This document shows, piece by piece, positions 461 to 12,132 of a stretch of 12,725 nt of DNA. The stretch spans positions 1 to 12,725 of IMG/VR virus record IMGVR_UViG_3300033159_000018; one strand, written 5' to 3'. Position 1 is the stretch's first letter. Each line of letters begins with the position of its first letter. The translations under genes and the position numbers were made by a program. The notes beneath the pieces were generated by a model. The model had not been told where the DNA came from, made no database searches, and saw only the letters and a list, made by a program, of their open reading frames with translations.

Positions 461-1420
461 ATGAATCAGTATGATACACGAATAGCCCAATTACGTTTCT
501 TCGCATCCTTTTCCGTCGCTTTATATCACCTATGGACTCTTCAATTAATCCCCCTTGTGTTGTTTCGTCCTGGTTGGTTGGGCGTTCCCCTATTTTTCGA
601 GTTATCGATTTTTCTGCTCCTTAACAGGCTCGATGCAAATCCCTCACTCACTCATTACTTCAAAAGGAGGGTGAGGAGGATATGGCCACTTTATTTTCTC
701 GCCGTCGTCGTAGTATTCTTAGCCGACAGATATGTGCTCCACATGGACGTGACATATTACGACTTGATACTCCATTTTACGTTCGTTTCCTTCGTCCTTG
801 TACCGTTTTCCTTCCAATATCTCTTCTGGTCTCTCCAGCTGGAGGAATGGATGTACTTAGCCATCCCCTTCGTCCATCGGATGAGCGATAAAGCAAAATT
901 TCAAACAGCTGTTTTATTGATTTTTACATCGTTTTTCTACAGCCTCTTCATCGTCTTCCTCCCCTACAACGAGTTCCGCTTACTTTACTTCATGCCTCCA
1001 TTCTGGTTAGGGGCATACGGGTGGGGGATAATTGCTTACCTTTTGAAGAAGAAACAGAAAGGTGTATCAGCCAACAAAAAAGCGAAATATTTCATACTAA
1101 TACTTTACGCTCAATATGTTTTTACTGCACTGATATCTTCCTCTAACGAATTTGTATATGAGTTCTTCACAAGGTTCCTGATTTACAACTTGGCGTTACC
1201 CGCTTTCGCCTTCCTTATCATTAACCCACCCAAGGTACTCAGTCGCGTGACGGTCTTCCTTGGAGAGGTAAGTTATGGAGTTTATTTGTGGACTTTACTA
1301 TTTCAGGAACTTTTTGGGATAAGTGGAATACTTTACGGCATACTGACCGCTATCGCAACTGAGTTCCCACTGAGAAAAAGAGAAATAATAAGTAGGTTGA
1401 GTTCCCACTCAGCTCTATAA
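461..1420 (+). CDS. Acyltransferase family 3 (OafA/Oac-like) integral membrane O-acyltransferase
   Basis: Multi-TM protein with family motifs LRxxAxxxVxxYH, GVPLFFxLS, FKRRVRRIWPLY, WSLQLEEWMY and LGEVSYGVYL. Confidence 0.9.
   Translation: MNQYDTRIAQLRFFASFSVALYHLWTLQLIPLVLFRPGWLGVPLFFELSIFLLLNRLDANPSLTHYFKRRVRRIWPLYFLAVVVVFLADRYVLHMDVTYYDLILHFTFVSFVLVPFSFQYLFWSLQLEEWMYLAIPFVHRMSDKAKFQTAVLLIFTSFFYSLFIVFLPYNEFRLLYFMPPFWLGAYGWGIIAYLLKKKQKGVSANKKAKYFILILYAQYVFTALISSSNEFVYEFFTRFLIYNLALPAFAFLIINPPKVLSRVTVFLGEVSYGVYLWTLLFQELFGISGILYGILTAIATEFPLRKREIISRLSSHSAL
903..914. repeat. Palindrome AAACAGCTGTTT, intragenic copy
   Basis: Perfect 12-mer inside the acyltransferase gene. Confidence 0.7.
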
Positions 1421-1427
1421 AAAAGTT

Positions 1428-2348
1428 TCACATCCTCGCAATAATGTATAGGTAGTCTTCTCTGAGTTGTTTATATTTTACGTAAGCTTCATCTGGTAAT
1501 AATCGTGGGGTGTATACTACATGTGCAAAGTTCTTTTTCAGCTCGTTCTTCAGTAGAAGCCCGACGTTGATACTGTTGTAATCCCTAAGCGGGTGTTTAG
1601 TTTTCAACAATTTCCCTGTGATGTCTACAACGTTCTTATATACGTGCGACTCAGACGTCGTCATCGTCCGTGGTACTACTGTTACAGCATAAGACGATGG
1701 CATGGCTTTCATCAGCACACCAGACAGTCTCGTTTCCGACGGTATAGTCATAAGCACGTTGCTAAACTTTATCGCCCACGTCTGTGCGTATTTATGTATC
1801 TTTTCTAGCCTCAATCTATCCATTTTTCCTACCTGTTTGCCGAACCCTATCCCAGCGTCGTCTATAATTATCATCGGGATCTTGCTTATTCCGTAATTTT
1901 TCATCGCCTCGATCAGGTCGTCGAGCTGTAAGGGGTCGATGATAATGTGTGCGATGGCGACGTCCCAGTCGCCGTACAGTGCATATGCGAGCCACAACGC
2001 TAATGAGGATTTGCCTCCCCTAGCCTCCCCGCTGATGATCGTCGTTTGACCCGTGTCGATAGGGACAGGTCTGATTTTCATGAACTTGTGTTCCTTTCTG
2101 TCTATCGCGATTTGGTATATTGTATGCATCATGAGAACCGTTAGGTCTGCAATACCTTCCATGTAATATTTTCTAGACAGATCAATGTACTGCTTCTCCA
2201 TGTATGGGAAATCGATGAACTTTACATTGCCCTCATACACCTGTGTGTAGTATTTATCGAACATCGGCAATAACGAGTTGTAATCTACCTTCAGGAGTGC
2301 CTCCTCTGGGTTTGTGTCGTTTAACTTTATGTAATCATTTATTTGCAT
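1428..2348 (-). CDS. P-loop NTPase (viral ATPase)
   Basis: Walker A GEARGGKS and Walker B MIIIDD. The ATG at 2348 follows GGGAG and overlaps the end of the upstream 170-aa gene, implying translational coupling. Confidence 0.85.
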   Translation of the reverse strand: MQINDYIKLNDTNPEEALLKVDYNSLLPMFDKYYTQVYEGNVKFIDFPYMEKQYIDLSRKYYMEGIADLTVLMMHTIYQIAIDRKEHKFMKIRPVPIDTGQTTIISGEARGGKSSLALWLAYALYGDWDVAIAHIIIDPLQLDDLIEAMKNYGISKIPMIIIDDAGIGFGKQVGKMDRLRLEKIHKYAQTWAIKFSNVLMTIPSETRLSGVLMKAMPSSYAVTVVPRTMTTSESHVYKNVVDITGKLLKTKHPLRDYNSINVGLLLKNELKKNFAHVVYTPRLLPDEAYVKYKQLREDYLYIIARM

Positions 2349-2847
2349 CAACTCCCACCTTCTCCATTATTTCTTTTTTCAAAAGCTCATAATCTTCAGG
2401 CTTCCAAACCTTAATTATGCTGTAGTGGTCTTTCTGACCTCTCTCGAACACGACGGGTTTGGGCAATTTAATTTTCACCGTACTTACTTTTTCCGCGGGA
2501 TATACATATTTTATAATAAGGTTCTGGTCGTCAAACTGTAAATCGTAGACCTTCTTGGGGAGGAAGAGTAAATTGGTCACGTTGTATGTACGTTCTTCTT
2601 TAGCTAATTTGACCACTATCTTTTCTGGAAACAGTAAAACGTTGTATATGCCCTTCTTTTTCACGTTTATTGTTACCGTAGTCCTGGATTTCCTTTTGGC
2701 TTCAGGGTCGTTGCAATCTGCTTGGTATAATTCGTAAACGTCATCTCCTATTTCCTTGACCTTATAGCACTCCCAGGGAAACGAATATATCTTGACGTCA
2801 TGGTTATGGGTCTTTACTCTCCTTATTTTTTTCTTGTAGCCTTTCAT
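2335..2847 (-). CDS. Hypothetical basic protein (170 aa), co-transcribed with the ATPase
   Basis: Long ORF with a TTTAAA box about 25-30 nt upstream (leaderless). It overlaps the ATPase start. Confidence 0.75.
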   Translation of the reverse strand: MKGYKKKIRRVKTHNHDVKIYSFPWECYKVKEIGDDVYELYQADCNDPEAKRKSRTTVTINVKKKGIYNVLLFPEKIVVKLAKEERTYNVTNLLFLPKKVYDLQFDDQNLIIKYVYPAEKVSTVKIKLPKPVVFERGQKDHYSIIKVWKPEDYELLKKEIMEKVGVDANK

Positions 2848-2955
2848 ATGTATAAACTTAGCATATTTGCTTTAAATTACTGAACTACATAACGCCCTTC
2901 CAAGACAACCGATCAAAAGTTAAATAAATATACTAACCTAATTAGATTGGTAACT

Positions 2956-3588
2956 ATGTTAGATAACCTTTCTCTCCTTTTAGAAAAATATTCCCCTGTC
3001 CGCTTAGAGGAGATGCGGGATTATCTAGCCAAACAATATGAGGAGAATTTGTTCGAGATATATTGGGGTATGCTGATGTTAGTCCTAAATGAAGATAAAG
3101 AGCCAGAAATACTCTCAAAAGAAGCTGAAAAAATAAGGAAAGATTTTGGATTTATGTTTGATGATGACGGGACTATAGAAGAATATGTTAATACGGTAAT
3201 GAACGGGTTACAAAAACTTATTGATGAATTAATGAAAAATGAAGAGGAGTTCTACAACGAGGCATTAAATTCCGATAACCCTAATTTCCTAATAACCACT
3301 TATTATTCGTTGTATTTACGCTTCGTAACAAAAGTATACTTAAAACTACAGACTGTCACAAAAACAACAAAAGATTCTAGGATTAAAGATATATTCAATA
3401 TCGCTAATTTTCTAGTAGGATTTTTCGGGATGCCTATATTACTCTATATAAAGAAAAAAGAAGTATTCCCTTATATATCTGAACTAAGCGTAGTATTATT
3501 ACACGCACTAGTTGCCGATAGGACACCTGTACCGTCGAAGGACTCCTTAGGATATTATCTATTTTTCAAGATCCACGGAAGGTGCTGA
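2956..3588 (+). CDS. Hypothetical alpha-helical protein (about 210 aa)
   Basis: Long ORF. The ATG at 2956 lies about 26-35 nt after TTAAATAAATA (2920-2930). Divergent from the 170-aa gene. Confidence 0.75.
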   Translation: MLDNLSLLLEKYSPVRLEEMRDYLAKQYEENLFEIYWGMLMLVLNEDKEPEILSKEAEKIRKDFGFMFDDDGTIEEYVNTVMNGLQKLIDELMKNEEEFYNEALNSDNPNFLITTYYSLYLRFVTKVYLKLQTVTKTTKDSRIKDIFNIANFLVGFFGMPILLYIKKKEVFPYISELSVVLLHALVADRTPVPSKDSLGYYLFFKIHGRC

Positions 3589-3656
3589 AGGACTAATACA
3601 CAAACCGTGGTGCTAAAACATATGTTTTTTAATACACGAACTCAAATAATCTTCTT

Positions 3657-4208
3657 ATGGGACTGATTGGTTCCCTGGCAACTGTATTTTATAAGATCAA
3701 CGAGGGTATAATATATTCGACTTTTCTCGTCGATTTACTTGTAACGTTGATTAATTTCAACGAATACTCAACAAACCCCGCACTCGGAAATTATATATCG
3801 TTATTACTGTCGTTCAACTTGGTGCTGTACCTGGAACATATTCTGGGGAGTATATTTCAGAGCGGTGGCATACTAGTAGGAGGGGCAATAGCAGGGCTTG
3901 CTACTATTTCTGCGTTATTCACAAGGAATTACCTCTTGAACTTGTCACAGCAGGAAATGAGTACTATGCAAATAATCTTTATTTATTTACTGCTTCAGTT
4001 CATTTTCAACAGCTTCGAGAGCATTTTAGTGTATTTCACCGCTATACTCATACCTATGACGTCCAGCATATCGTTGCCGTTCATCGCCCCACCATTACAG
4101 CTGTTTGTCCATGACCTCTCGTTAATTATTGATTTCATAGCATCGTTCGGAGAAGTGATGAGCATAATATACGTCCTTATGGCAACAGGAATGTGGAGCG
4201 AGATGTAA
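3657..4208 (+). CDS. Multi-pass membrane protein (183 aa)
   Basis: About 4-5 hydrophobic segments, with a TTTTTAAT box about 25-30 nt upstream of the ATG. Confidence 0.8.
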   Translation: MGLIGSLATVFYKINEGIIYSTFLVDLLVTLINFNEYSTNPALGNYISLLLSFNLVLYLEHILGSIFQSGGILVGGAIAGLATISALFTRNYLLNLSQQEMSTMQIIFIYLLLQFIFNSFESILVYFTAILIPMTSSISLPFIAPPLQLFVHDLSLIIDFIASFGEVMSIIYVLMATGMWSEM

Positions 4209-4257
4209 AAATAGACATTATAAGTGGTATGGTGCAATATTTAATAGGGGATCCAGA

Positions 4258-4437
4258 ATGGTGGAAACACAAATCGATGAGCAGAAAAAGATCCTGGAGA
4301 GGATGCATAGCAGAGTAGATTATATCATGAACGCTTACAAGGAATACCTAGACGCGTTAGCAGAGTATGACAGAACTGGAGTGTTGAAAATTCACGGAAG
4401 AGTTCTTTATGTAAAAGAACATAAAAACCAAGAGTGA
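4258..4437 (+). CDS. Small protein (59 aa), absent from the ORF track
   Basis: GGGG SD at 4247-4250 and ATG at 4258. Translates as MVETQIDEQKKILERMHSRVDYIMNAYKEYLDALAEYDRTGVLKIHGRVLYVKEHKNQE*. Confidence 0.75.
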   Translation: MVETQIDEQKKILERMHSRVDYIMNAYKEYLDALAEYDRTGVLKIHGRVLYVKEHKNQE

Positions 4438-4463
4438 GAGACTAGTGAAAGTGTTAATACCTC

Positions 4464-4475
4464 AAACAGCAGTTT
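4464..4475. promoter_or_regulatory. Palindromic operator variant AAACAGCAGTTT
   Basis: 11/12 match, preceded by CTC as in other copies, about 66 bp upstream of the TATA of 4561. Confidence 0.6.
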
Positions 4476-4560
4476 TGTGAGCTATAGTTTAATGTAGGCT
4501 GGGCTTGTTTTTCCCTTCCCCCACCATCAGCTTTATTTGCTGTAATTCTAGGAATATAAT

Positions 4561-4896
4561 ATGATTACCCAAAAAGAAATGGTTTCGGCAATTTATAACT
4601 GTGTTAAGAAACATGAAAAACACCTCGTAGACGAGAAGGCTTTTTTGATTTCTCTTTCTGTAGGAATCCCTATAGACGATTTTTACGAAATTGATGATCA
4701 CCTTACTTATCGTGGTCTGATAAACAGTTATATTGCTGACTGCGAAAGTTATTTGTCTACAATAGATAAATACGATGAGAAAACAGTTTTAGAGGCTTCT
4801 CTGCACATGTTTAACTTAATAAGGAGAGGAGTGCGTGGGAAGTTAAACGAGAAAGCCTCAAAATTGCTCTCGGAACTTAATATATTCCATGGATAG
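4561..4896 (+). CDS. Hypothetical protein (111 aa), paralog of 5474-5812
   Basis: Shares NC..H..H, AFLI, C..Y, YDEKT and KLLSEL with the 112-aa protein. Leaderless start after TTTATTTG (4532-4539). Confidence 0.8.
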   Translation: MITQKEMVSAIYNCVKKHEKHLVDEKAFLISLSVGIPIDDFYEIDDHLTYRGLINSYIADCESYLSTIDKYDEKTVLEASLHMFNLIRRGVRGKLNEKASKLLSELNIFHG

Positions 4897-4917
4897 GTTT
4901 TCTGCAAAGTATGTTGT

Positions 4918-4960
4918 AAAAGAAATAGATAAGAACAAACAAAACAGAAAAGAAGAAAAA
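4918..4960 (-). terminator. T-rich terminator between convergent genes
   Basis: A-rich run on the plus strand (T/C-rich on the minus strand) immediately after the stop of 4967-5317. Confidence 0.5.
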
Positions 4961-4966
4961 CTAATT

Positions 4967-5317
4967 TTAGTCTTCTTCTAGCTTATCAATTTTTTTCAAA
5001 CATAATTTGAAGCTTCTGCATACATAGTACATCACTAATCCCGTTGATCCGTTATACTGCTCCAGCAGATACACCTTTTTAGTTTTAGACTGAAGTTGTA
5101 ACACAACTCTATAGACTGAATAATATGTCCTCGGGTAGTATTTTGCTGTATATAGTAGCTCAATATCTGCTTGAATTTCACTGCACTGACCTGTAGACTG
5201 GTTATATTTGTTCTCTACATCGACGTCGATTTTATTATTGCTAAATTTCAGTGAAACGACTTCGTCATCTATATTTAAGAATACTGAGTTCCCGCATAAG
5301 AACCCTATCTGACGCAT
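4967..5317 (-). CDS. Hypothetical protein (116 aa)
   Basis: ORF with its own promoter (CTTAAATA, 5356-5349), a GGG SD-like site and a downstream T-rich terminator. Confidence 0.75.
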   Translation of the reverse strand: MRQIGFLCGNSVFLNIDDEVVSLKFSNNKIDVDVENKYNQSTGQCSEIQADIELLYTAKYYPRTYYSVYRVVLQLQSKTKKVYLLEQYNGSTGLVMYYVCRSFKLCLKKIDKLEED

Positions 5318-5430
5318 TCTGACCCTGCTTATTCTCTTAGCAGATCTGTATTTAAGCTATGCAACAAGTTGAGCAAAACCTTGTGACACAAAGCCGTAGG
5401 TGGTGGGGTGGGTGATGACATAGAATCCTA

Positions 5431-5442
5431 AAACAGCTGTTT
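5431..5442. promoter_or_regulatory. Palindromic operator AAACAGCTGTTT
   Basis: Perfect intergenic copy, upstream of the 5317 gene. Confidence 0.75.
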
Positions 5443-5473
5443 GACAGTGCGAAATAATAAAAAAACACTGACC

Positions 5474-5812
5474 TTAGACCTTAATACCCAGTTCAGATAA
5501 TAGCTTTTTCTCTCTATCGGTAAACTTCACTTCTTTATTAGCGTAATAATACCACAATTTAACGCTCACATCCCTAATAGTTTTTTCGTCGTAAGAAGAG
5601 AAGATCTTAACATATTGGCTACACTCACCTTTTGCGTCCTCTAATTTATCGAAATAAGCAACATAATCAGTATCAGGTGCGAAAAACTCTAAATCGTCCC
5701 CCTTAGCTGAAGCTATTAGAAAAGCCATTGAATTCACTAATTTATGATCGTTAAAATGCTCACTTAAACAGTTTATGTAGGAAGAAATCCTCCATCTATC
5801 GAGTGATAGCAT
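5474..5812 (-). CDS. Hypothetical protein (112 aa), paralog of 4561-4896
   Basis: Ungapped 49-residue alignment from AFLI to YDEKT with the 111-aa protein. Strong BRE/TATA and a GGGG SD. Confidence 0.8.
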   Translation of the reverse strand: MLSLDRWRISSYINCLSEHFNDHKLVNSMAFLIASAKGDDLEFFAPDTDYVAYFDKLEDAKGECSQYVKIFSSYDEKTIRDVSVKLWYYYANKEVKFTDREKKLLSELGIKV

Positions 5813-5819
5813 TTAAGGT

Positions 5820-5870
5820 TCCCCATTACACTCTTCTCGCAGAAGTATATAAACTTTCTGCACAACATGT
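5820..5870 (-). promoter_or_regulatory. Conserved strong promoter/leader cassette
   Basis: ATGTTGTGCAGAAAGTTTATATACTTCTGCGAGAAGAGTGTAATGGGGA, nearly the same as the cassette upstream of 6593. Confidence 0.75.
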
Positions 5871-5909
5871 TATGAAGAAAGAGCGGGCTGGGCGTCGTGC
5901 TAAACAGAA

Positions 5910-5927
5910 CTCAAACAGCTGTTTGAG
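5910..5927. promoter_or_regulatory. Palindromic operator CTCAAACAGCTGTTTGAG
   Basis: 18-bp perfect palindrome centred about 69 bp upstream of the TATA of the 5812 gene. Confidence 0.8.
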
Positions 5928-5957
5928 AGAAAAAAGCATAAAAAAACGGGCTGGCTT

Positions 5958-6104
5958 TTAACCGTACGTTGCTTGCAAATAAGCAAATAGACCCTCGCAT
6001 TCCTCTTCGGAATGCGAGGGCGAATTGAAAAGAAAATAATATGTATCTGGGGAATAGCCCCGTAAATTATAATTGTTTTGCAATAATTCCAAACAGTTCG
6101 TCAT
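5958..6104 (-). CDS. Small protein (48 aa), absent from the ORF track
   Basis: Strong SD GAGGTGA overlaps the upstream gene's TGA. Translates as MTNCLELLQNNYNLRGYSPDTYYFLFNSPSHSEEECEGLFAYLQATYG*. Confidence 0.65.
   Translation of the reverse strand: MTNCLELLQNNYNLRGYSPDTYYFLFNSPSHSEEECEGLFAYLQATYG
5992..6020. repeat. 12-bp perfect GC-rich hairpin
   Basis: CCCTCGCATTCC-TCTTC-GGAATGCGAGGG, inside the 48-aa ORF. Confidence 0.7.
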
Positions 6105-6116
6105 TTGGGGCTCACC

Positions 6117-6593
6117 TCAGTGTTGAACTACCCATTCATCTTCTACTACAATATTTTTAACCCTAATTAAACCCTTATAAGCGGACACGCGGTAGGGTTC
6201 TCCATTCTTGGCTGGAGGGAGTATGACTCCCTCCAGCTTGGATTTCTTCAGTAATTCCTCAGCTTCTTGCCTCGAATTTGTAGTTCCCAAGCTCTCCATA
6301 TAAAATAATAGAACAGATTTGTGTAATTGCAAAAGTTGTACCTGGAACGGCAATGGAATTACACCAACAATACAATCGTACTGTGTAGTAAGTTTCTTCA
6401 GTTCATCTATGTTATTTGGCAGTGTGTCTATTTTATTTATATTAATGCACACTGTTGCTAAATCCTCTTGTTGCATCCTCAAAAGTTCGTGCCTGGTTAC
6501 TAGCAAGCAGTTCTGAAATTTCATAGGTTGGGATTGACCTGAACTTGAAGCTTGACCTGGAGTAGAGGTGTATTGACTTTGAATCTGTGCCAT
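6117..6593 (-). CDS. Hypothetical protein (158 aa), candidate Csx16/Csx20-like ring nuclease fold
   Basis: The gene itself is well supported by its promoter and SD GTGGGG. The motifs LLVTRH and DCIVGVIPL resemble Csx16 (FVSRH...GDxVIGTLP). The functional call is by eye only. Confidence 0.55.
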   Translation of the reverse strand: MAQIQSQYTSTPGQASSSGQSQPMKFQNCLLVTRHELLRMQQEDLATVCININKIDTLPNNIDELKKLTTQYDCIVGVIPLPFQVQLLQLHKSVLLFYMESLGTTNSRQEAEELLKKSKLEGVILPPAKNGEPYRVSAYKGLIRVKNIVVEDEWVVQH

Positions 6594-6599
6594 TTTTTA

Positions 6600-6650
6600 T
6601 CCCCACTATACTCTTCGCAGAATCGGTATATAAAGTTTTCTGCCTAACAT
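6600..6650 (-). promoter_or_regulatory. Conserved strong promoter/leader cassette
   Basis: ATGTTAGGCAGAAAACTTTATATACCGATTCTGCGAAGAGTATAGTGGGGA. Confidence 0.75.
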
Positions 6651-6690
6651 AACTGCACAACCACGAGGGGCGAAAGGGCGAGTAGAAATT

Positions 6691-6708
6691 CTCAGACAGC
6701 TGTTTGAG
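6691..6708. promoter_or_regulatory. Palindromic operator variant CTCAGACAGCTGTTTGAG
   Basis: One mismatch, centred about 69 bp upstream of the TATA of the 6593 gene. Confidence 0.72.
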
Positions 6709-6767
6709 AGAAAAGCGTCCAGCAGTGACAGCTGAACAAGTACGAAAGCCCGACCCTCACGGCAAAA

Positions 6768-6791
6768 TCCCTCAAACAGCTGTTTGAGGGA
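6768..6791. promoter_or_regulatory. Palindromic operator TCCCTCAAACAGCTGTTTGAGGGA
   Basis: 24-bp perfect palindrome. Confidence 0.8.
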
Positions 6792-6856
6792 GAACGTGTT
6801 TAAAAACACGGCTTATCTGAGCCAGAACTTGGGTGAGCCGAAATTATGAATTTAAA

Positions 6857-6881
6857 AAATTCTCCTAAAAGGGATCAAAAA
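6857..6881 (+). repeat. Degenerate inverted copy of the CRISPR-like repeat (anti-repeat), followed on the minus strand by a T6 tract (6859-6854)
   Basis: Plus-strand TCCTAAAAGGGATCAAAAA compares with the repeat TCCGTAAAAGGGATTGAAGG, in the opposite orientation to R1 and R2. Confidence 0.6.
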
Positions 6882-6913
6882 TGGAAGAATATACATTTGC
6901 TTCGTGCTGAATT

Positions 6914-7009
6914 CCTTCAATCCCTTTATGGATGCGATGGTGAAGGGGCATGTCTAAATTTAATTATGATGATACTTCCGTTTCCTTCAATCCCTTTTAC
7001 GGATGCCTC
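6914..7009 (-). CRISPR. Mini-CRISPR-like array (2 repeats, one 45-nt spacer), no cas genes in the window
   Basis: On the minus strand, R1 (7009-6984) is GAGGCATCCGTAAAAGGGATTGAAGG and R2 (6938-6914) is ATCGCATCCATAAAGGGATTGAAGG. Both resemble Sulfolobales 25-nt repeats (ATCCC-AAAA-GGGAT stem and ATTGAAAG 3' handle). The spacer is 6939-6983. Confidence 0.75.
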
Positions 7010-7030
7010 AAAGTTTATACTCAGCCGACT

Positions 7031-7046
7031 TTAATAAGTTTTTCTG
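7031..7046 (-). promoter_or_regulatory. BRE-TATA promoter for the mini-array
   Basis: Minus-strand CAGAAAAACTTATTAA. Normal archaeal spacing puts the TSS at about 7008-7010, the first base of repeat R1. Confidence 0.65.
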
Positions 7047-7113
7047 TACTCCATGGGAAGGCTCAGGATACAAAAAGAATGAGAAGTTGAGAAGTATTCT
7101 CCAAGAAATTCGT

Positions 7114-7695
7114 CTACCTCGGCTTTGCGAAAAAATCCAGGATACTGCTTTGCCTGCCGTGGGACTTACTTACCAGTTGCTGTATTTCTTTCAGTTTCCT
7201 CCTTATGTAATTGACGTCCTTTAACTGCTGAAATCTGCCGAGTAACATCAAAGTAACGTCTCCGTAGTCGAAAGAATAGAATAAGGCTTCTTTCAGCTCG
7301 TGCCTAGTAGAAATGCCAAGATACCAGTGCTGGTATTTAGACGCTTTAATGAAATCATGGATTGTATAGTCTCTGTACTTCGGATCAGACGCGTATCCTG
7401 CAATCACTTTATAGTTATTTTCCCTCAGCTTGTCGGCAATTTCTAGCTGGCTCAGGGTATGAATAGGGACAACGTAAGCTATGTTCTTTGGGACTGGAAG
7501 AACGTAATTAATATTGTCTGGGTATAACGCTACCTCTATCTTGTTTCTGTTAAACCAGAGTTCCCTCAAGTATTTCTTATAATTTCTCTCTATAAGCAAC
7601 GCCTTTTTGTTGTCAAAAAACCTGGGGTATATTATATAGCCAGTGACGTCTTGAAGCTTCTGAATTAGAGGGTTATAGCCTAATGCTAGAATCAT
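7114..7695 (-). CDS. Protein of about 193 aa with a C-terminal PIP box; possible divergent TGT/DpdA-like barrel
   Basis: The true start is likely the ATG at 7695 (SD GGGGG, TATA TTTAAATA at 7735-7728). The C-terminus QSSILDFF matches the PCNA-interaction consensus QxxIxxFF. Confidence 0.65.
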   Translation of the reverse strand: MILALGYNPLIQKLQDVTGYIIYPRFFDNKKALLIERNYKKYLRELWFNRNKIEVALYPDNINYVLPVPKNIAYVVPIHTLSQLEIADKLRENNYKVIAGYASDPKYRDYTIHDFIKASKYQHWYLGISTRHELKEALFYSFDYGDVTLMLLGRFQQLKDVNYIRRKLKEIQQLVSKSHGRQSSILDFFAKPR

Positions 7696-7783
7696 TTTAA
7701 CCCCCATTAGTACCCTGGGCATGAAGTTATTTAAATTTCTAACGAGTTGTGCAGAACTGCGACGGGTGGGTGAGTCGAACAAA

Positions 7784-7805
7784 CCCTCAAACAGCTGTTT
7801 GAGGG
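7784..7805. promoter_or_regulatory. Palindromic operator CCCTCAAACAGCTGTTTGAGGG
   Basis: 22-bp perfect palindrome about 63 bp upstream of the TATA of the 7695 gene. Confidence 0.8.
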
Positions 7806-7899
7806 AAAAATGCCGTTCGACCAACCCCAGCGTGCTGAGCCAGCCTGCACGGGGAAAGGGTATAAAACAAACCGTTCTTTCTCTTCATAAAAAATAAAA

Positions 7900-8196
7900 T
7901 CATACCTTCGCTTCTAGATTGACTATAATGAAGTCCTTGTCGAGTGTCAATATCCAGCCGTAGTCCTTCATTTTCCTCAGGATGTTGTAAGCTTCCAGGG
8001 CGTCGCATTCCATAAAAGCGGAGGCAAGCTTGATCAACCTCTCCCTGTCAATGCTTAGGACTCCGTGTCTGCACTCTGTTATGCTGACAAGGAACCTGTG
8101 AAACTCGACGGCTTTCCTGTACTCGTCTTCAGTCATAGCCGTCGCTAGACCGTCAATATAACTGTTGGTTTTTGAAATTCTTTTCGTACTTTTCAT
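7900..8196 (-). CDS. Probable winged-helix DNA-binding protein (98 aa)
   Basis: The helix-turn-helix and wing pattern RERLIKLASAFMECDALEAYNILRKMKDYGWILTLDKDFIIV. Leaderless start after TTAATAAA. Confidence 0.6.
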   Translation of the reverse strand: MKSTKRISKTNSYIDGLATAMTEDEYRKAVEFHRFLVSITECRHGVLSIDRERLIKLASAFMECDALEAYNILRKMKDYGWILTLDKDFIIVNLEAKV

Positions 8197-8834
8197 AACT
8201 TGAATATAACCACTTATGGTTTATTAACTTTACCGTGTTTCTCTCAATAGACCATGAAGTTATTGAAAAAGTAACAACTCGGTGAAATTAACCCCTATAT
8301 AATATTAAACAAAAAATAAAAGGGAATAAACCCAGGGCTATAGCAAGTGTGCTACAAGGGCTACAAGGCTTACTAGGGGGCTTACTGGGGGCTTTTACAG
8401 TACGCTACACTAGTAGCTCCTTATATTATATTATATTTAGTTTTTAGATAGAGATACTTTACAGTATACTAGACACGTGCAACGACTGCCCTGTTTCTGT
8501 TCACGCCGTCAATTTCTACCCTTACACTAAAAATTTCTCTTCATAAAGTACGTCGTTTTAGGAAAAATTTCTGTTCATCACATTAATAATTGTAATTTAT
8601 TTCTGTTCATGTCTTCCCAGGATTTCCATCCTTATAAAGAAATAAAATGAAAACAGTGCTGGTCTAGACATTAATTTTGTAATAACTCCCAGCTTTACGA
8701 GGAGAAATTGTAAAGAATTTTTGGTAATGCAGAAGAAAGTTTTTGAAATTAAACCTGAGACTTACGTTCTTTGAATTTTTATTACTAAAATGAGAAAAAA
8801 AGTTGATAAAGTTAGGCGTCGGGATTAACGCTTT
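8197..8834. other. Long AT-rich non-coding region with short repeats; candidate replication origin
   Basis: About 640 bp with no ORF. It contains tandem GCTACAAGG x2 (8351-8368), CTTACT(A)GGGGG x2 (8369-8391), and TTTCT(G/C)TTCA x4 at 8494, 8534, 8568 and 8600. Confidence 0.45.
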
Positions 8835-9527
8835 TTAACGTTCGGGGAACTTGGGCTTCAACGCCCAAGCCTCAAGAATGTGGGTAGGGATATTGAAGCC
8901 CAACCCCTCAATGATGGTCTTCAAAAAGTTAAATATCCTGTCAAACTTGAATGTGAATTTTGTTATTTCAACTAATTTTTGTAGCCTGAAAATTATCTTG
9001 GTATATATCCATTGCTTTACAGAATCCAGCGTCGTAAACGCTTCTACCTTATGTTTCTTTAATATCTCCTTAGCCCCTGGACTGAATGAAAAAGCCACGA
9101 TACCAGGGAAAACATGATACCCTTTGGCTCGCAGTTTATTTACTATTTTATAGATCTGGTTGAGTTTCCACGGCAACTGAGATGGCACGATTGGCTTAGA
9201 AGTTTGGAACGAGAAATAGATAACGAAAGCAGTTTTCCTCTGCTTCTTAGTCCATTCACTAGTCCATGGATCTTCCAACAGAAGCACAAGTATTTTTCCT
9301 CCATATCCATCTTCATGAACTTCAATAGATCCCCTTTCTTCTTTGATTCGTGTTTTCGCCCACCGTGGCAAATTTATCAGATCTATTACGTCCTTAATAC
9401 CGAGCAATTGTTTCCTTAAACTGCCAAAGATCTTTATGACTTGTCCCTTTATCTCGTATAAAGAAAGAGATTGAGAGAAAAGTTTATTAGCAGAAGAAGA
9501 TACATTATTTATTGACCTAAACGCCAT
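8835..9527 (-). CDS. Hypothetical protein (230 aa), possible degenerate restriction-endonuclease (Mrr-like) fold
   Basis: Long ORF with a GGTGGGGG SD-like site. The segment GIVAFSFSPGAKEILKKHKVEAF resembles the Mrr-type C-terminal motif, but no clear catalytic (D/E)xK is visible. Confidence 0.6.
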   Translation of the reverse strand: MAFRSINNVSSSANKLFSQSLSLYEIKGQVIKIFGSLRKQLLGIKDVIDLINLPRWAKTRIKEERGSIEVHEDGYGGKILVLLLEDPWTSEWTKKQRKTAFVIYFSFQTSKPIVPSQLPWKLNQIYKIVNKLRAKGYHVFPGIVAFSFSPGAKEILKKHKVEAFTTLDSVKQWIYTKIIFRLQKLVEITKFTFKFDRIFNFLKTIIEGLGFNIPTHILEAWALKPKFPER

Positions 9528-9660
9528 TTTTCTTCTCTTCCCCCCACCCTTAAATTATAATAAATTCTTCCTTATATATTATTCTCCCCTTTCTTTCCTT
9601 GCTTTACGCCCGCTTTCTCACCACTGTGAGGCTTCCCGCTCTTGACTCACTTTCCTTCTC

Positions 9661-9672
9661 AAACAGCTGTTT
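9661..9672. promoter_or_regulatory. Palindromic operator AAACAGCTGTTT
   Basis: Lies in the divergent intergenic region, about 68 bp upstream of CTTAAAAG (9731-9738) of the RHH gene. Confidence 0.75.
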
Positions 9673-9772
9673 TAACAAATAGTCCTCTCCTTTCTCGCCA
9701 ACAGTCCCTCCTAACTTGTTAGCCATAAAGCTTAAAAGACTAGTTTGGTAATACATAAACTGGGGGTAAAAA

Positions 9773-10096
9773 ATGAAAATAAAATTGAACCCCGAGATGA
9801 GTGTCGTAACCTTTAAGTTAGAGGAGGATCTACTCCAAAAACTCGATTTATATGCTATGAAGTCAGGGTTAACTAGAAGCGATGTGATTAGAGAAGCACT
9901 GGAATCCTATGATTGGGGGAATAAGAAGAAAATAATGCCAATTCGTATTCGTACGATAACAGTTAAACTGGAGGGGGAGTTATTGCAAAAGCTCGATTTA
10001 TACGCTGTGAATGCAAGGGTAACTAGAAGTCAGGTAATTAGAGAAGCTCTCAAACATTATCTATCCTCATTTGATGGTGAGGGCGGTGAGCAATGA
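9773..10096 (+). CDS. Tandem ribbon-helix-helix transcription factor, aCcr1/CdrS-like
   Basis: Two RHH units: [33 protein letters not shown] and [33 protein letters not shown]. The duplication is also visible at the DNA level. Confidence 0.88.
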
Positions 10097-10344
10097 GAGT
10101 ACCAATTGAAGTACATCATCATGACCTAGAAGAGTACTGCTATTATGATGAACATGAAAGGGCTGTAATATGCGACGACTACCACGCCGAATATGAATAC
10201 TCAATAGACGAAGTAGAGTTCGAGTACACTGACTTGGAAGACATAGTTAATGAGTATTTCGACGACATTATCGACATCATAACTGACAACAAACGTTACA
10301 GAGAGAAATTACTTAAGAAGCTCGAAAAAAGCTCAAAACATTAA
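10093..10344 (+). CDS. Small, highly acidic His/Cys-containing protein (83 aa)
   Basis: ATGA overlap with the RHH gene and SD GGTGA. Confidence 0.78.
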
Positions 10345-10622
10345 GCATTACGAGTTTTTCCCATTTCTTCTCTTCTTTTTAAAAGCTGTATTACTTTTTT
10401 GAAATCTAATTCTCTCTTTTCCTTACTCATCTGCTTTATGATTTCCATTGCTCTCCTAAGTACCCTGTTTTGCCTCTTTAACTTTCTATTTTCATTTCTC
10501 AACCTTTTATTCTCTTTCTGCAATTTCTCTAATTTTCGTTCTAGGGTACTGATAGTATTAATAGCTTTAGCGTACTCGAGCCGTAATTCCTCATTTTCCT
10601 TAATTATTTCATCTTTTGTCAT
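10341..10622 (-). CDS. Coiled-coil protein (about 93 aa)
   Basis: Heptad-rich segment LERKLEKLQKENKRLRNENRKLKRQN. The likely start is the ATG at 10622, about 30 nt after TTTTTAAA. Its stop shares TTAA with the convergent gene. Confidence 0.7.
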   Translation of the reverse strand: MTKDEIIKENEELRLEYAKAINTISTLERKLEKLQKENKRLRNENRKLKRQNRVLRRAMEIIKQMSKEKRELDFKKVIQLLKRREEMGKTRNA

Positions 10623-10771
10623 AAGAGTCCAGCTCAAACTTGGAACAAAAGGTTTAAAAATGGTGTAAAGAAGGTTTATAGAAGTTTTATGGGGCTTATT
10701 CAATTTTTTTCCTCACCCTTCGCGGTTCTCGAGGAAGCTAACCGAGACGTCACGCGATCCGCGACAAAATG

Positions 10772-10788
10772 TTTTTAAACAGCTGTTT
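10772..10788 (+). promoter_or_regulatory. TATA box fused to the palindromic operator
   Basis: TTTTTAAACAGCTGTTT upstream of 10813. Confidence 0.75.
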
Positions 10789-10812
10789 GAGAATATAAAA
10801 TGAGGGGCAAAA

Positions 10813-11127
10813 ATGGCTCAGGAATGGGATGAAGATGAAGAAAATTATAGACAGGAAATGGAAAAGGTAATCGACCTTCTGGAGGAATGTAATATCGATT
10901 TTAAGGTCGAAGGCGATAAGATACTCATAAAGGGTGATGTTGAGTACGCAGAGATCTTCTCTCTGCCAGCAATAACAATCGTGCAGGGAGATAACCTGAT
11001 AGGTTTCGACAAGTTGTGGGGCTTTAACAAAATCACAGTCAACACCCCTACTGGCGTAAAAGAGGTTGAACTACCCCAAGGAGTATATGCGAATTATCAG
11101 TACCCATATCTTATTATCCACTTCTAA
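10813..11127 (+). CDS. Small acidic hypothetical protein (104 aa)
   Basis: SD GAGGGG. The TATA TTTTTAAA (10772-10779) overlaps the palindrome. Confidence 0.78.
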   Translation: MAQEWDEDEENYRQEMEKVIDLLEECNIDFKVEGDKILIKGDVEYAEIFSLPAITIVQGDNLIGFDKLWGFNKITVNTPTGVKEVELPQGVYANYQYPYLIIHF

Positions 11128-11211
11128 TCGGTTTTCCCCGAACTAAATCTACCTCGGTTCTTAACCCTCATTAGTTAGGGAGCGATATTACGCAGTCCAT
11201 AATACTAAATA

Positions 11212-11228
11212 TTTATAAACAGCTGTTT
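11212..11228 (+). promoter_or_regulatory. TATA box fused to the palindromic operator
   Basis: TTTATAAACAGCTGTTT upstream of the TFB-like gene. Confidence 0.75.
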
Positions 11229-11244
11229 GTGAATGAGAATCAGT

Positions 11245-12132
11245 ATGACAGAATCAATCGTTCAAACTCAAATCTATCAAGCACAAGACGCTGAATGCAT
11301 GGAGCTAGTTTCAGACGGCATATATACTATTTGTGCGGAAACAGGGGAAGTTATTGGGTACGACTATGAGACATTTTTTGTAACTAACTCAGAAGGCATA
11401 GATAAGAAATCTGGTTCCAAATCCGACAGGGTTTTTTCTCACTATCGCCCGCACAACGTCCTTTTACCTAATGCGGGGATCGGAACTATCCCTGCAGGGT
11501 TCGGCAGAAACCTAAGGACTTACGCCTTCGCACATAGACTATCTAAATTAATTACCGATTCTGCACAAAAAGCCGTCTTCATGCGTGTAGCACAAAAAAT
11601 CGCTCACAAGAAAATTAAGCATAAACTCTACATAATCGGTGCTTTTGCCATTCGTTATTGCTCCGTCGATTTTGACCAAGTCTTACAGCTCTTGCTCAAC
11701 TTCTCTGAGCAAGACGAGGAGACCGTAAGAAAGAGGCTTTCCCGTACCATAGAAACTCTGAGTTTTATTCTTAATCATAAGAAGGTGGGTTTGGCAGACA
11801 TAGAACTGCAGACGCGTAAACAGTTTCTCCAAGAATTCACGTACGACCTTCTTAGCAAGTACGGGTATACTAAGTACGCAGACAAATTCCTAAAACTCTA
11901 CCATCCCAGCCTGGTCAAAATAGCAGTAATATTATTGCTTCTAAAGGACAACCGTAAGGAGGAGGCAAAACAGTTGTATGAGTCTCCACCGAAATTCAAG
12001 ACGGGGTTTAAGCACTTTATTGTTGACTATGAAATTAACGGGCAAAGATATGTCAAAAGACTAAAGCATAGTCGCTTAAGATCTCTAGTATTTGGTGACT
12101 CACGCGTGTATAGCTTCAGGATAACCCTGTAG
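11245..12132 (+). CDS. Divergent transcription factor B (TFB/TFIIB)-like protein
   Basis: The N-terminal C-x-ICAETGEVI matches the Sulfolobales TFB ribbon (ICSETGEVL, recalled). It is followed by SDRV...PHN...AGIGT, resembling the B-reader/linker, and a helical C-terminal region. The ATG at 11245 fits a leaderless start after TTTATAAA (11212-11219). Confidence 0.6.
   Translation: MTESIVQTQIYQAQDAECMELVSDGIYTICAETGEVIGYDYETFFVTNSEGIDKKSGSKSDRVFSHYRPHNVLLPNAGIGTIPAGFGRNLRTYAFAHRLSKLITDSAQKAVFMRVAQKIAHKKIKHKLYIIGAFAIRYCSVDFDQVLQLLLNFSEQDEETVRKRLSRTIETLSFILNHKKVGLADIELQTRKQFLQEFTYDLLSKYGYTKYADKFLKLYHPSLVKIAVILLLLKDNRKEEAKQLYESPPKFKTGFKHFIVDYEINGQRYVKRLKHSRLRSLVFGDSRVYSFRITL

Follow-up and report, generated by a model that had tools for sequence, protein, structure and literature searches.

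The repressors described for archaeal viruses, SvtR (SIRV1), AvtR (AFV6), F55 (SSV1) and Aca8 (rudiviruses), are small ribbon-helix-helix (RHH) or winged-helix-turn-helix (wHTH) dimers which act on short repeats or dyads over the region from the TATA box to the transcription start site, and autoregulation is common among them. Little is known of the transcription, replication and packaging programmes of the large spindle-shaped archaeal viruses: ATV (Acidianus two-tailed virus) together with Sulfolobus monocaudaviruses 1 to 4 (SMV1-4). An early/anti-defence regulatory sequence was described for SMV2, SMV3 and SMV4 (Bhoobalan-Chitty et al. 2024, Nat Commun 15:3699; PMC11065993), and in the same work an inverted repeat over the B recognition element (BRE) was noted for SMV2 and a repressor was proposed. 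Here, the 12-base palindrome AAACAGCTGTTT (M1) and its 8-base core, ACAGCTGT, were analysed in the whole IMG/VR contig IMGVR_UViG_3300033159_000018 (12.7 kb, “the window”) and in related viral genomes. The core is a conserved, selected, virus-specific cis element of ATV- and SMV-type hot-spring archaeal viruses.

Eight perfect copies of M1 were located in the window where the original prediction, made from the sequence of the contig, had placed them (Table 1), and none appeared in 200 dinucleotide-preserving shuffles of the window (0 expected). With up to two mismatches, 13 sites were found versus 0.94 expected: besides the perfect copies, these were the three variants already reported (4464 and 6694 with one mismatch each, and 4095 with two) and two further sites with two mismatches, at 3616 (AAACATATGTTT) and 11968. 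Not noticed in the original prediction were the TATA-like box 23 bp downstream of site 6774, the location of sites 903 and 4095 inside genes, and the membership of the motif in a family of three variants that spans the genomes of related viruses. The claim that several copies extend to perfect palindromes of 18-24 bp was also borne out, in three of them.

The palindrome proved common to ATV/SMV-type viruses, not contig-specific, when the relatives were scanned as the original prediction had recommended. In the window, SMV1, SMV3, SMV4, ATV and ATV2, the core outnumbered every other palindromic 8-mer by far, with an enrichment of 30-60 fold: 10 copies in the window (0.16 expected), 22 in SMV1 (0.59), 26 in SMV3 (0.76), 33 in SMV4 (0.63), 44 in ATV (0.84) and 47 in ATV2 (0.77). 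The enrichment was weak in SMV2 (6 copies vs. 0.70 expected), which shares the structural module at 72-94% identity yet carries very few core sites, and whose GC content is higher (0.436 vs. about 0.385). The core was no outlier in STSV2, and zero copies were present in SYV2 and SSV19. Some 20 further hot-spring contigs had at least 3 copies. By its sequence relationships, the source of the window is an SMV-like bicaudavirus: SMV1, SMV3 and SMV4 were the nearest isolates (about 81% nucleotide identity across 20-30% of the window), and its DnaA-like ATPase was 89-91% identical to those of SMV1, SMV3 and SMV4 and 28% identical to that of ATV. Proteins common to ATV and the SMVs showed mostly just 25-36% identity. 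Most window proteins had no Pfam family (the exceptions were the acyltransferase, a partial methyltransferase and a tandem RHH protein), and no RNA families or tRNAs were found in the window. An 18-bp form of the palindrome was scanned for in one genome per species (185,579 species): no Sulfolobales genome was positive, and a host-chromosome element or provirus was rejected, the 18-mer matching only unrelated bacteria and two haloarchaea. The Sader repeat of SMV1a is unrelated, being a 16-bp tandem repeat in gp41.

The element is not just a promoter motif. The density of core sites was 2-14 times higher in non-coding DNA than in genes; among intergenic regions, they were present in 40 of the 156 tandem, 7 of the 30 divergent and 5 of the 29 convergent ones. 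Copies within genes numbered 9-28 per genome, 4-12 times above synonymous-codon shuffles, and exceeded all 100 of these (means 1.9-2.4, maxima 5-6). Coding sites were conserved above the background for aligned 8-mers between ATV and ATV2 (25 of 27 vs. 0.49, p=2e-6), SMV1 and SMV4 (13 of 14 vs. 0.39, p=5e-5) and SMV3 and SMV4 (8 of 9 vs. 0.25, p=1e-4). For non-coding DNA, the window kept all four sites compared with SMV3 (background 0.22, p=0.0025) and all three compared with SMV4 (background 8-mers 21-22%). Both core sites located inside genes of the window (903 and 4095) were conserved in SMV1. The integrase genes (ATV 62273, SMV1 37658, SMV3 40351, SMV4 38531) have a core site at about 0.4 of the gene, which encodes AYKQL(F/Y)D by means of the rare codons CAG CTG; in SMV4, this site sits in the gap between two integrase fragments.

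Within the frame AAACA-NN-TGTTT, SMV1, SMV3 and SMV4 used nearly only three centres: GC (12-14 copies), TA (8-11) and GA/TC (4-8). These centres correspond to two half-sites, AAACAG and AAACAT, in all combinations. The TA form was nearly always intergenic (27 non-coding vs. 4 coding sites) and had its centre 8-20 nt (in most cases 15-20) upstream of the start codon in structural genes; a TTTTTTAA-type box was located about 20 nt further upstream, and the TA form therefore lies after the TATA box and before the predicted start site. The single TA site of the window (3616) precedes the gene for a conserved membrane protein (3657), and its arrangement recurs before the orthologues in SMV1, SMV3 and SMV4. 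SMV1, SMV3 and SMV4 all keep a hybrid form, AAACAGATGTTT, at 20 nt upstream of gp03, the major capsid gene. The consensus of the non-coding sites of SMV-type genomes was a 20-bp dyad, TCTCAAACAGCTGTTTGAGA; ATV conserves the 8-bp core alone, with A-rich and T-rich flanks.

Three classes of position were seen for the GC form across genomes. In the first, the palindrome is fused to a TTTTTAAA box, at the box's downstream edge and 15-30 nt from the ATG; examples are genes 10813 and 11245 of the window, gp09 and gp16 of SMV1, and orthologues of these genes. In the second, it lies at 47-66 nt. In the third, at 99-119 nt, it occupies the upstream end of a conserved promoter cassette roughly 100 bp long. 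With respect to the TATA box, the sites of the window fell into two sharp classes, fused (+7) and distal (-63 to -69). The predicted distances were reproduced, including the longer one for gene 5317, as was the overlap with TATA at 10813 and 11245, and the positional bias extends beyond the window: both classes recur in SMV1, SMV3, SMV4 and independent metagenomic contigs.

The cassette holds a second palindrome (M3), TAAC-NN-GTTA within TTCTGCC...GGCAGAA, which abuts the BRE/TATA in the window, SMV1, SMV3 and SMV4 and is centred 50-62 nt (mostly 54-58) from the ATG. Distances between M1 and M3 peaked at 45-64 bp (18 of 26 pairs not more than 200 bp apart), and no pair was closer than 30 bp. 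Genes 5812, 6593, 7695 and 9773, and more loosely 5317 and 4561, share the order ...TAAC-NN-GTTR-GCAGAAA-TTTATATA...GGGG-A-rich-ATG, a layout common to SMV3 gp48, gp63, gp69 and gp71 and to SMV4 gp39, gp40 and gp58. These distal promoters resemble the published early/anti-defence cassette in the strong BRE and TTTAWATA box, the conserved flanks and the small single genes, and an inverted repeat overlaps the BRE in both; M3 is probably the repeat noted for SMV2. The published analysis covered just 100 bp upstream of start codons, the string “palindrom” occurs 0 times in its text, and AAACAGCTGTTT is absent there. With a distance of 99-119 nt from the ATG, M1 reaches or exceeds that limit and, unlike the published cassette, is also found fused to TATA boxes, at structural promoters, in genes and in ATV. 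The rule of 63-69 bp is thus real, yet it is a property of the already published cassette (PMC11065993) that holds the distal sites, and M1 adds an upstream boundary element to it. For the M1 motif itself, no description was found in the searchable literature by full-text search; the ATV and SMV1 genome papers were outside the results, and an earlier mention is possible.

Two window proteins are related to known anti-defence families. The product of 6117-6593 was 51% identical to SMV3 gp69 (ADG.68), and that of 4258-4437 (59 aa) was 85% identical to the Phd-like anti-toxin SMV1 gp44 (ADG.17), which was shown by experiment to neutralise a host Doc toxin (PMC11065993). The other window genes had no match to the listed ADG families.

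Table 1. Palindromic sites, candidate regulatory proteins and gene block of the window. Distances are from the palindrome centre to the TATA centre unless indicated. ORF, open reading frame.
Feature	Position	Strand	Context
M1, perfect 12-mer	903-914		Inside acyltransferase gene 461-1420; orthologous site kept in SMV1 gp48
Sister palindrome AAACATATGTTT, TA centre	3616-3627		Centre 9 nt upstream of TATA centre of gene 3657, the BRE position
M1 variant, core ACAGCTGT intact	4095-4106		Inside gene 3657-4208
M1 variant AAACAGCAGTTT	4464-4475		66 bp upstream of TATA, gene 4561
Block of small single-gene units (4561-4896, 4967-5317, 5474-5812, 5958-6104, 6117-6593)	4561-6593		Mostly early/anti-defence-type promoter cassettes (not scored for 5958-6104, sited directly behind 6117-6593)
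M1	5431-5442		84 bp upstream of TATA, gene 5317 (minus strand); 32 bp past stop of 5474-5812
M3-type core TAAC-NN-GTTR	5863-5872	-	Adjoins BRE/TATA of gene 5812
M1, 18-bp palindrome	5913-5924		69 bp upstream of TATA, gene 5812 (minus strand); upstream edge of early-type cassette
M1 variant AGACAGCTGTTT	6694-6705		69 bp upstream of TATA, gene 6593 (minus strand)
M1, 24-bp palindrome	6774-6785		23 bp upstream of TATA-like box 6799-6806, doubtful ORF 6846-7034
M3-type core	7740-7749	+	Adjoins BRE/TATA of gene 7695
M1, 22-bp palindrome	7789-7800		63 bp upstream of TATA, gene 7695; 100 bp past stop of 7900-8196
98-aa winged-helix protein (phrog_13045)	7900-8196	-	Conserved in SMV1-4 and ATV
M1	9661-9672		69 bp upstream of TATA, tandem RHH gene 9773-10096
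M3-type core	9712-9721	+	Adjoins BRE/TATA of gene 9773
Tandem RHH protein	9773-10096	+	Pfam RHH_1 1.4e-14 (2 stretches), RHH_3 1e-9
M1 fused to TATA box TTTTTAAA (10772-10779)	10777-10788		Gene 10813-11127; centre 7 bp downstream of TATA centre
M1 fused to TATA box TTTATAAA (11212-11219)	11217-11228		295-aa gene 11245-12132; centre 7 bp downstream of TATA centre
295-aa protein (phrog_19561)	11245-12132	+	Weakly TFIIB/TFB-like by fold only

Folding at 78 C left six of the eight perfect sites without a stable fold, and only the two longest kept a marginal hairpin. Within the sites, conservation was highest at the dyad centre, i.e. the loop of the would-be hairpin, and sites also occurred in divergent intergenic regions without 3' ends. 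Together, these results point to a constraint on the duplex sequence, as for a protein binding as a symmetric dimer, and an intrinsic hairpin (terminator or cruciform) was rejected on the 78 C folds and the invariant would-be loop.

Our preferred explanation, to which we give somewhat less than an even chance, is an operator family for a symmetric dimer, which would repress over the region from TATA to start, mark a boundary at the early cassette and have its affinity tuned by half-site variants. AAACAGCTGTTT would be the commonest form of a family of duplex-DNA binding sites with the invariant core ACAGCTGT and, in SMV-type genomes, the half-sites AAACAG or AAACAT arranged head to head; the sites are built into promoters at fixed positions. 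Their reader is most likely a sequence-specific protein that acts as a symmetric dimer, which an invariant 8-bp dyad naturally suits. Archaeal repressors act at sites overlapping the TATA box or the transcription start site. At the TATA-fused sites (10813 and 11245), the bound protein would block the assembly of TBP, TFB and RNA polymerase, leading to repression, and the TA form located between TATA and predicted start in structural genes of SMV1, SMV3 and SMV4 would act likewise. Sites 63-84 bp upstream of TATA would form the upstream boundary of the early/anti-defence cassette, probably as a boundary or co-operative anchor and not as a classical activator site. Graded affinity and, through it, graded timing or strength may result from the three centre variants. 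The existence of the sites, their enrichment, clade conservation, fixed TATA positions, half-site rule and selection are established here; the binding of a protein, its dimeric state and the direction of regulation are inferred. In the original prediction, one dimeric factor was suggested to activate one class of genes and to block another; the selected element and the position classes stand, and activation at the distal sites found no support, the constant spacing belonging to the published cassette.

Several observations weigh against such an operator family. For the seven genes named in the SMV1a RNA-seq time course (PMC12199143), expression was not cleanly sorted by site type: gp05 and gp06 (TA form) and gp09 (GC form) were early, and gp11 (TA form) was full-time/late, as were gp03, gp23 and gp24. 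Many sites are away from promoters (in five of the 29 convergent regions and in the 9-28 positions per genome inside genes) and are conserved above background. In ATV and ATV2, with one site per 1.2-1.4 kb, the sites were more evenly distributed than random (coefficient of variation 0.71 vs. 0.97, P about 0.007), and a pure regulon needs no such spacing; even spacing was not found in the SMV genomes. No protein emerged as the binder among the candidates: none of the three put forward originally (tandem RHH, wHTH and TFB-like proteins) co-occurs cleanly with the motif, no viral protein had a presence/absence pattern matching it, and phyletic profiling for a protein present in SMV1, SMV3, SMV4 and ATV and missing from SMV2 gave nothing credible. 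Each of the three candidates was rejected on its distribution, as described below.

The AlphaFold2 model of the 98-aa winged-helix protein (pLDDT 87; higher than 96 for residues 20-98) showed the order H1-S1-H2-H3-S2-W-S3, and Foldseek matched it to the winged-helix domains of CAP/CRP, GntR, Rep and ArsR (probability 0.85-0.99, E 0.03-0.1). In the window, SMV1, SMV3, SMV4, ATV and three more contigs, a long M1 sits at the 3' end of the gene for this protein or shortly beyond it, at positions ranging from 19 bp before the annotated stop (SMV1) to 102 bp after it; SMV2 has the homologue, no M1 past its 3' end and few sites overall. As the M1 binder, this protein was rejected: a homologue with 60% identity and the same recognition helix is encoded by a contig (L167) with 0 core sites in 20 kb. 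The winged-helix protein more likely belongs to a replication/maintenance module together with the 230-aa gene 8835-9527 and the intervening 640-bp non-coding stretch (8197-8834), which is a possible origin or maintenance module. This stretch has four TTTCTNTTCA repeats (8494, 8534, 8568 and 8600) and, at 8367-8390, a tandem of GGCTTACT(A/G)GGG, and the gene/gap/gene layout recurs in SMV3 (gp66-gp67), SMV4 (gp59-gp60) and ATV (gp21-gp19). L167 (IMGVR_UViG_3300033159_000002) comes from the same sample as the window; a 20-kb locus of this 50-kb contig was analysed, and it carries 8 copies of TAAACTGGGGAGTTTA, no M1, and genes for homologues of 7114-7695, 7900-8196, the RHH protein and the coiled-coil protein. 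TAAACTGGGGAGTTTA is presumably the motif of Sulfolobus conjugative plasmids, and L167 looks like a conjugative-plasmid-type element sharing a gene module with the virus.

The tandem RHH protein is related to the aCcr1-like/CopG-like RHH proteins of SMV3, SMV4 and ATV. It consists of an internal tandem duplication (107 aa, two RHH units); SMV3 gp63, SMV4 gp58 and an unannotated ORF of SMV1 have a single RHH unit (57-67 aa). It was rejected as the binder, the family also being encoded by SYV2 and SSV19, with 0 sites. The published 9-bp aCcr1 box (PMC9976878) bears no resemblance to ACAGCTGT.

All loci encoding the 295-aa family were core-rich, and most keep the TATA-fused M1 at its promoter: seven loci, with the window counted twice, retain the site, and their proteins were 46-100% identical to that of the window. 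No Pfam match was obtained at E<=5 in any of the 33 members of the family, the profile retrieved nothing from the PDB at E<=10, and hhalign against a true viral TFB, SYV2 gp50, gave a 1.8% probability; zinc-ribbon or cyclin repeats were not detected by sequence profile. In the structural model (pLDDT 71), after its own family, the top five PDB matches were all TFIIB chains (E 0.18-0.4), and among the BFVD matches were TFIIBs of giant viruses and a putative SSRV1 TFB (E 0.084); these TFB/TFIIB fold matches were weak (E 0.08-0.4, TM about 0.2-0.3). The model has an N-terminal three-stranded sheet (low confidence, pLDDT about 28-52), a linker and nine helices. The segment ICAETGEVIGYDYETF resembles the final strand of a TFB zinc ribbon that has lost its cysteines. 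SYV2 gp50 (29607-30629 of locus L164) is a clear TFB homologue (Pfam TFIIB 1.6e-27, zinc ribbon 6.5e-9), and SYV2 has no ACAGCTGT. The 295-aa protein was rejected as a universal binder, as ATV and ATV2, which have the most sites, lack it even by profile search.

A viral initiation-factor switch, in which the 295-aa TFB-like protein, and no dimeric repressor, reads the sites as a core-promoter element specific to the virus, would fit the fold matches in PDB and BFVD, the existence of true viral TFBs such as SYV2 gp50, the abundance of cores in every locus encoding the family and the fact that sites touch TATA on either side. It is quite improbable: a TFB signal is missing at the sequence level, confidence in the model is moderate, ATV and ATV2 have no such protein, a perfect dyad suits a dimer and not a monomeric TFB, and many sites have no nearby TATA box. 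A hairpin of RNA or single-stranded DNA, be it a terminator, a processing site or a cruciform, is highly improbable, and so is a role of CAGCTG as a target of restriction or methylation. The sites are palindromic, often follow T-runs past stop codons and include a PvuII-type hexamer; against a hairpin stand the folds at 78 C, the divergent regions having no 3' ends and the conservation in ATV of the 8-bp centre only. Restriction targets are normally avoided and were here enriched 30-60 fold, the flanking A and T were needed in most CAGCTG copies (10 of 12 copies for the window, 44 of 62 for ATV), and no shared DNA methyltransferase was seen. Recombination at boundary sequences that shuffle gene cassettes, an alternative of the original prediction, appears highly improbable as well. 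The two ends of nucleotide homology between the window and SMV1 (lost at 4489 and resumed at 11208) each lie within about 15 bp of a site, which is weakly suggestive, and sites divide successive single-gene units of the variable region; these are two breakpoints only, homology often breaks in intergenic DNA anyway, sites in genes and structural promoters and the fixed TATA positions are left unexplained, and a genome with dozens of identical palindromic sites for crossover would be unstable.

A conserved DNA-binding protein of the host (Sulfolobaceae), recruited or titrated by the viruses, is decidedly unlikely as the reader of the sites. The absence of a viral protein matching the motif and the loss of most sites from SMV2, whose higher GC content suggests a different host, make a host factor possible, as does an 8-bp core that is invariant from ATV to the SMVs despite their low protein identities. 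We know of no host factor with this specificity, the aCcr1 box is a different sequence, and Sulfolobales genomes lack the 18-bp form. A genome-wide architectural or “self-tag” site, by which a protein recognises, organises, segregates, replicates or packages viral DNA and for which promoter positions are secondary or result from coupling to transcription, is possible, if on the unlikely side. It would account for the excess of in-gene copies over codon shuffles, the conservation of coding sites between ATV and ATV2 and between SMV1 and SMV4, the similar rates of sites in tandem, divergent and convergent regions, the even spacing in ATV and ATV2 and the lack of the extended form in host-order genomes. 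A mere tag does not explain the much higher density in non-coding DNA or the sharpness of the TATA-relative positions, the TA form occurs almost solely at promoters, spacing is not even in the SMV genomes, and SMV2 retains its structural module with very few sites. A combined version, in which ACAGCTGT, with conserved copies in and between genes and, in ATV, a copy about every 1.3 kb, is the “self” code of ATV/SMV viruses for packaging, recruitment to replication factories or protection, its copies doubling as operators with affinity set by G/T half-sites, seems unlikely; if true, no sequence-tag system would have been described before it for an archaeal virus. The sites may have a nucleoid-organising or packaging role, as was also suggested in the original prediction.

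The idea of a genome tag, which can be tested, is raised by the in-gene conservation and the even ATV spacing. With its 30-60 fold enrichment, its conservation across divergent viruses and its fixed promoter positions, the 8-bp dyad is a ready-made handle and could lead to a DNA-binding factor that acts globally in these viruses or their hosts. The published cassette, used for the prediction of anti-defence genes, gains an upstream element and two further promoter classes from it, and the motif is a simple marker for bicaudavirus fragments in hot-spring metagenomes.

Two other genes deserve mention. A 93-aa coiled-coil protein (10341-10622), in which the segment KENKRLRNENRKLKRQNRVLRR is very basic and which may bind DNA, is homologous to SMV3 gp62, probably the “ZapB type cell division protein” entry in the supplement of PMC11065993. 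In SMV4, near-identical copies of a 101-aa gene (41003-41308 and 42636-42941) have identical upstream regions, each with M1 64 nt from the ATG and a core site within the gene; the pair is a recent segmental duplication.

The operators of SvtR, AvtR, F55 and Aca8 are found at a handful of promoters, while here there were 20-47 conserved copies per genome, including those in coding regions. MetJ met-boxes (AGACGTCT) and E-boxes (CANNTG) are likewise uninterrupted palindromes of 8 bp in which the two central bases vary and define function (here CAGCTG, CATATG and CAGATG); the resemblance is one of site logic only, no bHLH protein being encoded here and no MetJ-type role being assignable to the RHH protein. 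The parS sites read by ParB and DNA-uptake sequences are also short, over-represented, conserved and both genic and intergenic, features joined here by the even spacing in ATV. Unlike the sites described here, parS clusters near origins and self-tags lack fixed TATA positions, and the only annotated ParB-like genes were those of ATV (gp70) and ATV2, SMV1-4 having none. The hr regions of baculoviruses, which are eukaryotic viruses, are clustered imperfect repeats of 28-30 bp bound by IE1, whereas the sites here are single and short; in both, virus-specific palindromes are dispersed over the genome, serving in baculoviruses transcription and possibly replication.

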